Part shown: piece by piece, positions 1,142-6,579 of the stretch
How positions within the stretch are numbered: position 1 is the first letter of the stretch
Layout of the letters: each line of letters begins with the position of its first letter
DNA from: Saccostrea echinata
Taxonomy: Eukaryota
Assembly (NCBI RefSeq): GCF_033153115.1
Contig: NW_026889757.1
Location: forward strand, 5,394,001-5,458,000
DNA length: 64,000 nt
Reading direction: 5' to 3'
Program-made: the position numbers and the translations under genes
Notes under the pieces: generated by a model
The model's input: the letters and a program-made list of their open reading frames with translations, nothing else
Told to the model about the DNA's origin: nothing
Databases searched by the model: none

Positions 1142-4073
1142 ATGTCTTCTCCTAGTATGTCCAGCATTGATTCTGTGTTAGAAGAATTGAAATTACAGTA
1201 TCTTATTGGCCGATTTCATGAGGAAAAAGTAGAAATTAGTGATATTCAGAGCTTGACAGATGGTGAGCTTAATCGTCTCGGGGTGACAACTATTGGAGAC
1301 CGGGTAAGACTGAGAGAAAAAGTGACTGAATTAACAAAACGCGATTGCTCGTCACATCAACAAACCCCTTCCACAAGCAGACCGTCAGCACCAGAACAGA
1401 ATGAACTAGGTGTGGATCATTTAAGGAGACAGAGAAATTTGCTATTTTCTAGATCTAGCACTAGTAGGAAGAGGAAGGATGTTGCAGATCCAGATAAATG
1501 TGTGCAAGTTAATAAACGCTCATACAGAGGTTGGACAGTTTCAGTGATGTGTTTATCTGATAAAAACAGTACCAGAGTCCCCACTGCGGATGAAAAAGAA
1601 CTTTTGTTAAAAGCAGGATTGGGCCTGAAAAAAATGAAATTTGGATTGATGGATGGAGAGACAGAAGTGATACAAAAACTTTCATCTGATGAAACTGACG
1701 AAAACGATGAATGTCTTGGCTTTCCTCAATTGAAGACTTGTGGTGGATTTGAATTGATGAGAAGTCAATCAAACAGCAGAATTTTAACTTTGATTGACAT
1801 TGAATGGTCTGTTAGAAATCTGAAGGCTTGCATTGGATCACAAGGTAAACTTTACATCAGACCAATACAAATGAATCTCTCAACTGAATCTAAAAAGAAA
1901 AAATTGGAAAGTACCAAATCACTGGCAACCGAAACATGCAAGCAATGTGGAGACTCATTTTCAATGGCAGAGCTAAGAGCACATTGTCAGTCCTGTGTTG
2001 GAGAATCTAATGAAACTAAAGATGAGAAAAATGAACAAGAAATAAACACACCAGATGCAGAGGAGACAGATGACTTGCCAGATCCTTTACTGGAACCTGC
2101 AACAAATTCCACTACATATATGGAAACAACAGCTGCTATTTCTGCAAGCTCTGAATTAGTATTCTTTATGGATGAACCGAGTTTCTCAAATAATTTGGCT
2201 GACAGAGAAATAAATATTAATCATGATACTGAAGACTTGTCCACAGAAGATGTTCAGCCAGTAAGCATTATTGATACAGCTACTAGGGCAGTTCAGTATT
2301 GTACTGCACAGCAAATACAAGATCCTGTGGATATTTTACGATATTTACAGTCTGTCCTGGTCATCGGACGGAAATTAGACATTGATGATCCTTCCCAGCC
2401 TATCGAAGGCCAAACTAACTACATCTGTGTGGACAGATCTAATATACTGACAACAGCGTTTGAAGAGATAAAGGCAATAGATGATCTAAGGTTCACTCTA
2501 GAAGTACAATTTTATGGCGAGGTATGTTTTTGCATGAACTTATATGCAACTTCATACTACGTAGTATTTCATTATATAAATCTTTTTAATGTGAAATCTA
2601 TTCAGTGTATAAATTAAAAAAGCTAATTAAACACAAGAAACTAAGCAAAGAATTTTAATGTATGTCTTATTCTCTATTCCTTTTAACTTGAAGTATGTCT
2701 TTAAATGCACATAAATATACATATGTATGGTTTATAGGTAGCGGCAGACTATGGTGGTCCGAGAAAAGAGTTCTTCCAGCTGGCCTTGATGGAGATCAAA
2801 GAAAAATACTTTGATCATGGTATTAGAGAGCATTTGGCTGAGGACTACACAATAGTTGGAAAAATTCTTGGTAAGTTTATCGCTGTAAAATTTTCTTCCT
2901 TTTGAGTCTATTATTGTAAAATATTCTGAGATACATTTTTGAAATGGTAAATGAACTAAAATATTTTTATACGCATTCTTTGTAAGTTCATTACAAAAAA
3001 AATTGACGTGAAACTTTATTACATACATTTTTTTCAATCATACATGGACCTTAAGTGAAATATTTTTTCATGTAACTCACATTGCCCTATATATATATAT
3101 ACATTTGTAGCTTTGAGCATTCTTCAAAATGGAAAACTCCCACGGTTTTTTGATGAGGAGTTACACAGTCTTGTGTTTTCAGAGGTGTCTGCCAGTTCTA
3201 GGTGCATCACAAATTTGAGAGCTGGGCTGGATTCACTGGGACTGTATACGGTATACCATCTTTTTAATATCTGACTCCAGCTATACCGGGGTGCACTGTG
3301 TACATTTTTTGATATGTTAATGATTTTTATTGATCAATTCGAGTTAAAATTTGTAGGTTGGTGTAAGGTTGCCTATGTTCAGATATTTACTACAACCATC
3401 AACCACCAGTATAACAGTAAAAGCTCTGATCCAACTACTGCATCCAAAGTTTGCAGAGGAGGGGTCCAATACAAGACGTTTTGAAAATATCATATATGCA
3501 ACTTTTATGAAATACCTACGAGAAATTGCAAGTAAGTTACTAGTTTTTAAGCAAACATCATTCAATAAAACAAATGTATTGTGAAGACAACAATAAAAAC
3601 ATTTACTATTTTTTAATATTTGAATTAGTGATTATCTTAAGTCAGACTGATGGTTGACATCAGATACTAAAGCATGCTAAATGGGGAGAGTTTTTGGAGA
3701 CTGTCTTGAAAAATCAATTAACAAAATTGAAAGTACAGCTGTAAGTAATATGGTCTTCTACTTTGTTTTAGCAACATCTGCATTTTCAATCATGATTCCC
3801 TTTTTAGGTGGCAGAAGAGGAACTGTATCTCTACAGCATGTTTTGCAGTTCACAACAGGTACACCAGAAGAGCCTGTGCTTGGTTTCACACTACACCCAT
3901 CTATAGATTTTGTTGAAGCACAGTCTAAGTCAGGTTTTATACCCACTGCAAATACATGCATCAATACCCTGAGATTACCAAGACCAACATCTGATGTACA
4001 TTTACCCTCGGAGGAGGAACTTTTTCGCTTATATGACTACGCATTTATGAATACATTTTATGGATTGTATTGA
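1142..4073 (+). CDS. Transposon-borne HECT E3 ubiquitin ligase-like protein, 697 aa: SAM + C2HC (UBZ-like) finger + shortened HECT. Exons 1142-2521, 2738-2870, 3111-3250, 3357-3531, 3808-4073
   Basis: All four introns are GT-AG and phases join in frame (2094 nt). Splicing rebuilds the HECT motif FYGE|VAADYGGPRKEFF, plus LQFTTG and the catalytic motif IPTANTCINTLRLP. N-terminal SAM-like segment VLEELKLQYLIGRFHEEKV..LTDGELNRLGVTTIGDRVRL. Zinc finger CKQC-x11-H-x3-C. Probable 5'UTR intron at 1020-1137. Confidence 0.88.
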
Positions 4074-5232
4074 ATTCTTTTGTCGTCTTAGAGCATTAGG
4101 GATCACTTTACCCAAGGTCTGTTTGTCTGTCTGTTCCTTTGTCTGTCTTTTTTGGCTTGAACTATAATGCTGGAAATATATTTAAAGAAAAGATAACTTC
4201 CATTTAGTTTAATTTGTCTTTAATGATAATCTATAGCAGGTGACACATGCATTTCTTGGAAACTCTAGTTGACTTTAACTGCACATTCTGAAAGATGCTT
4301 AGTGCTATTTTTGTAAATAGGAACATGTACTTGAAGACTTCATTATGGTTTTGTGTAATTTGATTTGTTGAAAGCCCATGAGGTCACTTTTTTGCGTCTA
4401 GAAATGGAGTATGTTTGAATTTATGTGGCCAAAAGAGTCAAATTTGTGTAAAGATTTCTTTTTTCAAAGCCAAACACTGTGTTTAGCCACAAAGGATTTT
4501 TTTTTTATTTCTTCTACACATACAGAAAGAAATAATAATGAAGAGCATGACTGATAGGAGTGAAGAAGCAGTTAATGTGTATAGTGAACTTGAGTATGGC
4601 TTACACCTGCATTTTGAAAGAACATTTAAAATAAGGTTACCATTTGTGTACATGTATTCCTACCTTATAATGCAGGCCTATTTTCACAAAAAAATAATTA
4701 AGATTTTTTCAGTGATAACAATCACTGCACATTCACTAAGTAGGAAAAAGTTTTTAGCAAAATGCAGACCAACAAGATTTTTATCAAAAATTGTATTACT
4801 AGAGGTTATAAGTACTGCATGTCAACAATTCAAATGTGATATGTTTGAAGTGTGTGATAAATTTTGGAATGTTTTGTAAAAGCTGCGGTAATGAAAAGTT
4901 CTACAATGGAGGAGTCACATCAGTCTAATTAAAAAAAGTTTTCAACAAAGATTAAGCAATTTTTTCCTTAATTTCTTGGAGCATGTGCTACCATTGTATA
5001 CATAAACGTTGATCACAATATGATGAATGTCAGTATGCAATGTCCAAGATACCAGTACATATGTGTATCAAAGGTTCTTGTAAGTATTTTCATGAAAATA
5101 AAAACACTGCATTGCTAAATAGCCAATTTTTTATCAGCCACAGGTGCATGTTTTTGATTCTTCTAAATTCCAGTTTTCACTCAAAGGATAAAAAAATCCA
5201 CGATTTTAAACATTATAGTTGCATTTGTGGCC

Positions 5233-6579
5233 TTAATCATTGAACATTTGAATAACTCTCAAAGCTGTTATATAATCTTCAATGCCAAAATTTCTTTGAA
5301 ACTGCAGAACTGAGATTTCTTCTGACAACATTTGTTGGCAATGGTCAATTAAGGCAGAGTTAAGAGGAGGAAATATTGGTCTTTCATTTTCTTCTACGTC
5401 AGAAAGGTCACCATATATTAAGTCCTCATGTAAGTCTTGATCTATGTCCATCCCTACAGGGTTCTGTATTTGTCCAGACATCCACAGAGCTTGTGGGGTG
5501 GACTTTACAGTTCTAATTCTATGTGAATTCCATGCTTTGGACCACACACCAAGCTTTCTGTTAATTTCTGCCATATATATGTAGTGAAGTGCTTGCAAAT
5601 GCGTGCTGTTCAAGCAGTCAAGGATTCCTAGATCCTCCATGTGGTAAAATAAGTGGTAAAAGTAACTAAGAACACCTTCAAACACGTCACGCCACAGCCT
5701 TTCTATCCTTTGGTTATGTGTGCTTTTGCCTGTAATCATCCCATTAGGTCCTCTTTTTGCTAAAATATAGTCTGCTACTCCAACATTTTCTAGACCTTTG
5801 TCACTGCGAACTCGAAGAGGTACACCATACTCATTCACACCTCCTAAGAAATGTTGGAGAACAGTTTCCGACTTGTTGTTGTCAGAACAATTTAAGAACA
5901 TAACCATTCTACTAAAACCATCAATACCACCCACAATCACAAATCGCCATCGGATTAGTTTATGGTTTGTGTCAATATGCCACAAATGGTTTGGTCCCAT
6001 GACGTTATAAACTCTTCTGTGGAGCCTTGTCCTTCGCCGCTCCACTACTCCTGTTTCGTCTGTTCGGTGTATAGAATCTCTGATTCGCCATCTTTGAATT
6101 TGCAGTCCTTCTTGTTCCAGGATTTGTTTCAACATTTTTTCACCACATAATGGAAAATCAGCCTTTGCTTTTAACACTCTCATATCAAGCTGTTGATCTG
6201 TTATATTACTAAAAGCGATTTTACTTAAAGAATACTTGTTCATTCGTCGGTATATTGTTCTCTGCGAAACCAACAAAAGGTTAGCTATTTCAGATATCTC
6301 AAAACCATTTTCCAGAAGATTTTCAAGTGTGCATTTAGGAATGTCATATTCAGGAGCCCCTCCATCCACTGTAACTTTGCCTGGTTTACAACTTCCATAC
6401 TTCACACACTCAGTACGCAACTTCATCATGTCAGAACTGTTAGTTATTCCCAAAGTTTGCAGTTCAGCCATGGAGAGTTTTCCAACAATGTCTGGTGTTA
6501 TCTTCTCCTTTTCAAAGTTTGAGTAAACAGTCTCTAAATGAAGTTTTTTGAGAACTTTTGTCATTGCAGTATCCGCCAT
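5233..6579 (-). CDS. DDE transposase/integrase (IS3/IS481-like), 448 aa, with N-terminal SAM-like and HTH domains
   Basis: Uninterrupted ORF. Catalytic motifs WHIDTNHK..GGIDGFSR, RVRSDKGLEN and HNQRIERLWRDV. HTH segment ISEIANLLLVSQRTIYRRM. SAM-like segment VLKKLHLETVYSNFEKEKITPDIVGKLSMAELQTLGITNSSDMMKL. Confidence 0.92.
   Translation of the reverse strand: MADTAMTKVLKKLHLETVYSNFEKEKITPDIVGKLSMAELQTLGITNSSDMMKLRTECVKYGSCKPGKVTVDGGAPEYDIPKCTLENLLENGFEISEIANLLLVSQRTIYRRMNKYSLSKIAFSNITDQQLDMRVLKAKADFPLCGEKMLKQILEQEGLQIQRWRIRDSIHRTDETGVVERRRTRLHRRVYNVMGPNHLWHIDTNHKLIRWRFVIVGGIDGFSRMVMFLNCSDNNKSETVLQHFLGGVNEYGVPLRVRSDKGLENVGVADYILAKRGPNGMITGKSTHNQRIERLWRDVFEGVLSYFYHLFYHMEDLGILDCLNSTHLQALHYIYMAEINRKLGVWSKAWNSHRIRTVKSTPQALWMSGQIQNPVGMDIDQDLHEDLIYGDLSDVEENERPIFPPLNSALIDHCQQMLSEEISVLQFQRNFGIEDYITALRVIQMFND

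Follow-up and report, generated by a model that had tools for sequence, protein, structure and literature searches.

A SAM-bearing transposase and a predicted SAM-HECT ubiquitin ligase in an IS3EU-type transposon from the oyster Saccostrea echinata

The published hallmarks of IS3EU DNA transposons (PMC10045372; PMC12730594) are TAYGG..CCRTA ends and a 6-bp target site duplication (TSD). For IS3EU and GingerRoot elements, PMC10045372 and PMC6839031 describe the same ends and 6-bp TSD, inverted ends that are long, and a transposase of the integrase or IS3-IS481 type with a DDE core and without an HHCC finger. An element that has these features in common with them lies at the start of the DNA analysed here, a stretch of 64,000 nucleotides from the oyster Saccostrea echinata (NCBI RefSeq assembly GCF_033153115.1, contig NW_026889757.1, positions 5,394,001 to 5,458,000 of the forward strand; hereafter the window, with position 1 as its first letter). 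Beside its transposase gene, the element carries a convergent gene for a predicted HECT ubiquitin ligase (E3), and both proteins begin with a SAM domain. It is highly probable that the element is a complete, autonomous IS3EU transposon of an old two-gene clade, in which a transposase with SAM, helix-turn-helix (HTH) and DDE domains is paired with a convergent E3 built of SAM, ubiquitin-like, CCHC and short HECT domains.

IS3EU elements with accessory genes are already known from fungi, where families carry genes for a TET/JBP dioxygenase and an alpha-kinase (Kojima 2025, PMC12730594). The fungal and the oyster elements have in common a conserved extra enzyme gene, an opposite orientation of the genes, and cargo thought to aid the element against its host. 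The oyster system differs in three ways: its extra gene codes for a HECT ubiquitin ligase, it occurs in animals, and its cargo protein and transposase have a SAM domain in common. When PMC10045372 and PMC6839031 were searched by term, neither a SAM domain on the transposase nor a ubiquitin-related gene was mentioned. A literature search, with Repbase entries outside its range, found no report of a HECT gene or a SAM-bearing transposase in IS3EU or GingerRoot elements, and the search found no HECT ligase reported as conserved transposon cargo.

Mobile elements and viruses are known to bring modifiers of ubiquitin or SUMO with them, such as the ULP1-like proteases of plant Mutator-like elements, the OTU proteases of some Helitrons and ICP0 of herpesvirus. 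What these systems have in common with the oyster transposon is that the element brings its own ubiquitin or SUMO enzyme, presumably manipulating host control, but they use proteases or RING ligases, whereas the oyster cargo is a predicted HECT ligase. Transposons with extra enzymes show how mobile DNA manipulates its host, and a HECT ligase kept over a long time by a transposon would add ubiquitin conjugation to the known transposon-borne enzymes. The pair also offers a two-protein system for asking how eukaryotic transpososomes are regulated or removed.

Borders and mobility of the element

The transposon spans window positions -345 to 7207 (7,553 bp), and its left tip lies just outside the window, as read from the sequence. 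A genome-wide terminus search combined with the sequence read gave identical 23-nt termini at C8:5393655(+) and C8:5401207(-). The left terminus, TATGGAACGCCATAGCTGCCTTA, starts at -345 and is preceded by TAAACG, and the right terminus, its reverse complement, occupies 7185..7207 on the minus strand. When the two ends were aligned with each other, 47 of the first 50 bases matched. The perfect 6-bp target duplication, TAAACG, was read on both sides of the element, at -351..-346 and at 7208..7213. Subterminal arrays of a 21-bp repeat were detected at both ends in inverted orientation by Tandem Repeats Finder (TRF) and inverted-repeat analysis; the left array covers 1..329 on the plus strand and runs on upstream to about -309, and the right array covers 6656..7171 on the minus strand. 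The window copy and the copies on C73, C5 and C2 all have the ends TATGGAACGCC...GGCGTTCCATA (TATGG..CCATA). Since the termini fit TAYGG..CCRTA and come with a 6-bp TSD, the element was assigned to the IS3EU superfamily, an assignment made by termini, TSD and transposase type. The window holds a complete IS3EU-type DNA transposon of Saccostrea echinata. An earlier note, made from the letters of the window alone, had described two intact convergent genes inside one element at 1142-6579. These positions take in the two coding regions only, and the element extends beyond both; the two genes do lie between the same inverted termini and the same TAAACG duplications.

Movement of the two genes together was seen in a sister family. 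Its copies on C73 and C5 both contain the transposase and the ligase, share the 23-nt terminus of the window element and have 42-bp arrays. They were ~97.5% identical in two long blocks spanning the 8.28-kb element and differed at 8 of 1,395 sites in ligase exon 1, and their TSDs are different (CTACAC in C73 and CACCTA in C5). The transposase and the ligase thus move as one unit. Genome-wide, the terminus was found 287 times in the forward and 289 times in the reverse orientation, compared to 0 for the control, and many of the matches pair ~1.7 kb apart, forming gene-less derivatives with 6-bp TSDs of their own. With ~290 terminus pairs genome-wide, most members are of this short gene-less kind. 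One of them (L057, C2:4412554-4414219) is 1.67 kb long and has the TSD TTCTAT. Another derivative (L058, C38:1633267-1635381), 2.1 kb long, is a non-autonomous internal deletion of the window's own subfamily; it retains window positions -345..643, 805-896 and 971-1102, ending just before the ligase ATG, and then the right array. The two derivatives represent two subfamilies, and in both of them the left non-coding region is preserved along with the termini and the subterminal arrays. In the window, this left internal region lies 5' of the ligase ATG at 330..1141 on the plus strand, with matches of ~80-85% at C38:1633267 and at other sites, and is probably the promoter and 5' untranslated region of the ligase gene.

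A transposon copy with two open genes could also be a domesticated locus that no longer moves and in which both genes serve the oyster. The window copy stands alone in its subfamily, both of its reading frames are intact, and RefSeq treats its ligase as an ordinary gene, all of which would agree with domestication. The high identity of the termini and the perfect TSD argue against it, as do the non-autonomous derivative of the same subfamily and transcript evidence that is close to nil. Domestication would also leave unexplained why the same pair is found in many other mobile families, and we consider it very improbable.

Other insertions were seen in and around these copies. The right array of the C5 copy (L033+L038, C5:13539000-13554999) contains another, nested transposon of ~2.7 kb (reverse-complement 11913-14583), which has the ends CAGTCCCTGAAACGTTCTAC and GAACG-rich subterminal repeats. 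A relative of this nested transposon, with 80-90% identity, adjoins the C73 copy (L032+L037, 12959-15347). In the copy at C5:10988047-11027704, the last ligase exon lies ~27 kb away from the middle ones, which suggests that large later insertions occurred inside that copy.

Linkage and age of the gene pair

The pairing of the two genes was followed in other copies of the transposase. Among the 26 closest transposase matches, with 42-100% identity, 22 had a convergent HECT C-lobe exon 1.2-10 kb away, and so did 17 of the 19 closest matches that reach the N-terminal SAM domain. More than 50 more distant matches to the rva_4 family had no convergent HECT exon, except for two partial ones with ~49% identity. 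These two partial matches, at C30:28551893/28557683 and C54:24499088/24505430, align at 48-49% with query residues ~208-369, and their convergent HECT exon is ~5.5 kb away. A separate rva_4 family has a 514-aa open reading frame (ORF) that is ~40% identical in the core and starts with a non-SAM N-terminus. No HECT gene was found within 40 kb of its members (L023, L025, L027 and L030; for example C36:9749287-9753252). This family is a useful natural control.

At least seven families with the pair are present in this genome. Between families, synonymous sites were saturated and the nonsynonymous divergence (dN) was 0.18-0.56, with the transposase and the ligase comparably diverged. In at least three families both genes are open, as represented by the RefSeq ligase models P0121, P0122 and P0125 together with the transposase ORFs. 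These comparisons show long-term constraint on both genes. Within families, dN/dS was 0.3-1.0, ratios that are uninformative because they were computed from 2-20 differences, and a Mantel test of transposase against ligase distances gave r=0.96, a value driven by near-identical copies within families. With the 90-aa exon, the deep branching of the seven families was star-like and unresolved.

The linkage was also found outside the oyster genome. When metagenomes were scanned with the transposase profile, HECT matches were located downstream and on the opposite strand in 14 of 80 loci, and one 9-kb contig (L085) carries a complete ligase gene with the SAM domain included. Among metagenome loci in which the contig continues downstream for 2 kb or more, the 19 transposases that are SAM-less were also without HECT, and the SAM-bearing transposases mostly had HECT. 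In protein searches, both protein families were found in many bivalves; in addition, the transposase is among the annotated proteins of a coral, and those of an acorn worm include a fragment of the ligase. The earlier note had reasoned that its proposal would fall if other genomic copies were without the linkage. The linkage was instead kept in diverged families and on foreign metagenome contigs, and the SAM transposase and the HECT gene were mostly together in genome and metagenome loci.

These results bear on where the ligase gene comes from. The idea that a transposase gene came to lie by chance beside a single-copy HECT gene of the host has nothing in its favour beyond the RefSeq listing of the ligase as an ordinary gene. 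It is refuted by the location of both genes between the same inverted termini and TSDs and by the convergent pairing both in the closest transposase matches of the genome and on 14 foreign contigs, and its probability is negligible. Chance neighbourhood was therefore rejected on the shared borders and the recurrent convergent pairing. The ligase could also be passive cargo, that is, a host gene that was captured once and has been carried along without helping the element. DNA transposons do acquire host genes or gene fragments, as described in the GingerRoot paper (PMC6839031), and the role of the TET/JBP and alpha-kinase genes in fungal IS3EU elements is only presumed (PMC12730594). However, the ligase has stayed open and recognisably conserved across a divergence that saturates synonymous sites, its catalytic cysteine is kept in every copy recovered, it is present in at least seven families in this genome and also on foreign contigs, and it is lost only in gene-less derivatives, which rely on other copies. 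Passive cargo is thus improbable. The ligase is the transposon's own gene, kept by selection on the element, and is neither a host neighbour nor a recently captured fragment.

Domains of the transposase and the ligase

Both ORFs were located where the earlier note had put them, at 1142..2617 on the plus strand and 5233..6579 on the minus strand. The ORF at 5233..6579 is the transposase gene, which has no introns and encodes 448 aa; it was analysed with PF24764, invariant columns, AlphaFold2 and Foldseek. The protein matched Pfam PF24764 (rva_4) at 2.7e-74 and rve weakly. A SAM domain at aa 5-58 (nt 6406-6567) is followed by an HTH at aa 82-115 and a DDE/RNase H core at aa 190-373, and the DDE residues D203, D260 and E293 were invariant in the family alignment. 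The predicted fold matched retroviral integrases, IstA and TnsB in Foldseek, and in the AlphaFold2 model the N-terminus consists of the SAM domain and the HTH and has no HHCC finger. As a single sequence, the transposase SAM domain scored 17.4 against SAM_1, which is below the Pfam cut-off of 23. The transposase family profile, built from 48 sequences, matched the SAM domain of tankyrase-1 with E=1.3e-4, and AlphaFold2 predicted a five-helix bundle at aa 5-58 with a pLDDT of ~88.

The ORF at 1142..2617 proved to be only the first exon of a five-exon gene. The coding sequence of the ligase totals 2,094 nt, giving 697 aa and a stop codon, and the product is identical to the RefSeq model P0121, "uncharacterized protein LOC133181305 [Saccostrea echinata]". 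P0121 was used for the whole-protein searches, and the other work was done exon by exon. All exons are on the plus strand. Exon 1 (1142-2521) encodes aa 1-460, with the SAM domain, the ubiquitin-like domain, the CCHC finger and, after a variable linker, the first part of the HECT N-lobe. Mapping of P0121 placed exon 2 (VAADYGGPRKEFF...) at 2738-2870 with GT-AG borders, exon 3 at 3111-3250, exon 4 at 3357-3531 and exon 5, with the C-lobe, the catalytic Cys660 and the stop codon, at 3808-4073. The introns are GT-AG except for intron 4 (3532-3807), which, as read from the mapping, opens with GC (GCAAGT after an exon-final A). A spacer of 1.16 kb (4074..5232) separates the convergent genes and holds their 3' regions.

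The domain order of the ligase is SAM, ubiquitin-like domain, CCHC finger and short HECT. The SAM domain scored 24.6 bits against SAM_1, compared to the Pfam cut-off of 23, and AlphaFold2 predicted five helices at aa 9-70 with a pLDDT of 95-97. Its best structural match was the SAM domain of tankyrase-1 (Z 9.3, rmsd 1.9 over 61 residues), followed by BICC1 and ANKS3/6. At about aa 130-245, AlphaFold2 predicted an alpha/beta domain with a pLDDT of at least 95, which repeatedly matched ubiquitin-like folds, namely the ubiquitin-like domain (ULD) of TBK1, Ufm1, talin F0 and ubiquitin, with Z-scores of 6-7. These matches suggest a ubiquitin-like domain at a Z level short of proof. The CCHC finger, CKQCGDSFSMAELRAHCQSC, is located at aa 266-285 (nt 1937-1996) and has the spacing CxxC-x11-H-x3-C, with all four ligands invariant in 18 homologues. 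This is the spacing of UBZ4 fingers, the ubiquitin-binding zinc fingers of the Rad18/WRNIP1 type. In the AlphaFold2 model the finger is predicted to fold as beta-beta-alpha, with strands at 263-265 and 272-274 and a helix at 275-285.

The C-terminal part of P0121 scored 36.8 bits against Pfam HECT, above the cut-off of 23.9, in an alignment that covers profile positions 216-284 only. In the PDB, P0121 matched AREL1, RSP5, E6AP and ITCH, with alignments in the C-lobe and at the beginning of the N-lobe. An Atlas model of the HECT domain aligned to canonical HECT folds with TM scores of 0.76-0.81 by query. Cys660 (nt 3957-3959), in ...IPTANTCINTLRLP..., lies in the C-lobe loop 37 residues from the C-terminus, where HECT ligases have their catalytic cysteine at ~35 residues, and was aligned with the cysteine of the AREL1 motif ...PTAHTCFN..., which is presumably the catalytic cysteine of that enzyme. 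The corresponding cysteine was present in every C-lobe peptide recovered from other copies, so the catalytic cysteine that the earlier note had read in the ligase was found in place. With the family profile above its cut-off and the catalytic cysteine in place, the ligase is a predicted HECT E3. The G2E3-like short HECT proteins of animals are similar in having a short HECT domain and the same kind of C-terminal catalytic loop, and the model aligned to a G2E3-like cluster with a TM score of 0.81. The N-terminal part of G2E3 consists of PHD/RING-like fingers, whereas the oyster ligase instead has SAM, ubiquitin-like and CCHC domains.

The two SAM domains and possible roles of the ligase

The earlier note had aligned the N-termini of the two proteins with each other and proposed that both are SAM domains. 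The strings it gave were exact, and the mutual alignment has 16 identities over 52 positions with a pairwise BLASTP E-value of 1e-8. A profile comparison of the transposase SAM with the ligase SAM by hhalign gave a probability of 99.2% and E=3e-19. Cross-profile scores between the two were 25-51 bits, exceeding the best SAM matches in the PDB, which reached 24 bits for the transposase profile and 21 bits for the ligase searched as a single sequence. On this profile evidence, the two domains are homologous SAM domains, and their closeness points to a duplication within the element lineage.

The nearest solved structures of both SAM domains are SAM domains that polymerise or assemble into hetero-complexes (those of tankyrase, ANKS3/ANKS6 and BICC1). 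The SAM domains of tankyrase-1/2, ANKS3-ANKS6 and BICC1 were the best matches by sequence profile and by structure, and they provide a precedent for the head-to-tail joining of different SAM domains, in a likeness that is limited to fold and family. By analogy, the related SAM domains of the transposase and the ligase may co-assemble head-to-tail, as in ANKS3/ANKS6 or tankyrase, and through this co-assembly the transposase, bound to the subterminal repeats, would recruit the E3. The HECT domain could then ubiquitinate the transposase itself or nearby host proteins of chromatin, repair or silencing. Modification of the transposase might lead to its turnover or to clearing of the finished transpososome, which would let gaps be repaired. 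The predicted ubiquitin-like domain and the UBZ-spaced finger would be in keeping with a role of the ligase in reading or joining ubiquitin signals at such sites. We put this forward as our best guess, one that is still less likely than not: ligase and transposase would assemble through their SAM domains on the subterminal repeats, and ubiquitination of the transposase or of nearby host proteins would follow. A broader version is less likely still. In it, an ancient clade of IS3EU elements in animals, present in bivalves and on the foreign metagenome contigs and probably more widespread, would operate a ubiquitin-ligase system of its own through a SAM-SAM heteropolymer, with the E3 acting on the transposase or on host chromatin and repair factors and thereby clearing the transpososome or blunting silencing. 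If so, this would be, as far as we have found, the first description of a HECT ligase that works as an integral component of a transposon. Of the transposon-encoded ubiquitin module that the earlier note had envisaged, the HECT E3 gene carried by the transposon is supported, and SAM-SAM docking, thioester formation and targets are hypothetical.

The main alternative, which we rate only slightly less likely than this mechanism of co-assembly, is that the transposon encodes an E3 whose SAM domain does not bind that of the transposase. Each SAM domain would then self-associate or join the same host SAM scaffold, and the E3 would act on host proteins, in the way that viral E3 ligases remove host restriction factors. 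In the self-association variant, the transposase would multimerise for the synapsis of two ends and the ligase would oligomerise. The closest solved SAM domains include the homopolymers of tankyrase and BICC1, SAM domains from the same element show no pair-specific similarity, and ligase-type SAM domains are very common, as a profile search with the ligase SAM returned 1,066 clusters at E<=0.001 in public protein sets. In that search, the top 150 matches, at 61 bits or more, were all ligase-type SAM domains or fragments, and the transposase SAM domains could not be ranked against host SAM domains. Separate roles fit less well with the finding that the transposase and ligase SAM domains resemble one another more than either resembles a SAM domain of solved structure. 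The two SAM domains also travel together in the data tested, which fits partners as well as it fits simple duplication.

Several observations weigh against a SAM-coupled ubiquitin ligase at work in this element. The HECT domain has ~245-260 residues compared to ~360-430 in the matched solved HECT-domain chains, and because it is ~100 residues shorter, E2 binding and catalysis are uncertain; G2E3 has a similarly short HECT domain, and its HECT activity has been questioned. The finger scored 14.6 bits against Pfam zf_UBZ, below the cut-off of 25.6, and the TRAFD1/XAF1, zf_C2HC_14 and LYAR fingers scored about the same, with one homologue passing zf_C2HC_14. The UBZ-spaced finger of the earlier note therefore held for its spacing and ligands but did not pass the UBZ family profile, and we do not file it as UBZ, a label that would rest on the spacing and the predicted fold. 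SAM domains from the same element were not consistently more alike than those from different elements, so the co-evolution check that the note had proposed gave no consistent pair-specific signal. The co-occurrence of SAM with HECT traces to one clade and represents roughly one evolutionary event, and two metagenome loci are exceptions to it, one with a SAM domain and no HECT within 3 kb (L073) and one with HECT and no detected SAM domain (L104). The window copy is the sole member of its subfamily, with the nearest DNA 73-74% identical, and for that reason its own activity is unproven. Finally, three poly-A RNA-seq runs with the same species label (1.6-1.9 Gb each) yielded, over 5.7 kb, counts of 7, 6 and 1 reads; every read aligned with 95-99% identity, and no read crossed a splice junction. 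Parts of both genes are also covered, at ~95-97% identity, by contigs from an RNA library. As very weak evidence, the RNA data neither show nor exclude expression.

The ligase SAM search also bears on the annotation of bivalve genomes. The longer matches were SAM-HECT proteins. Since most of the ligase-type SAM matches were predicted fragments of short length, numerous copies of such elements seem to have been broken up into separate gene annotations. Ligase genes annotated as ordinary host genes in bivalve genomes, such as LOC133181305 here, inflate apparent "HECT gene family expansions".

Outside the element, ~640 bp upstream of it, an interstitial telomere-like run of ~9 TAACCC units was found at C8:5392967-5393019.

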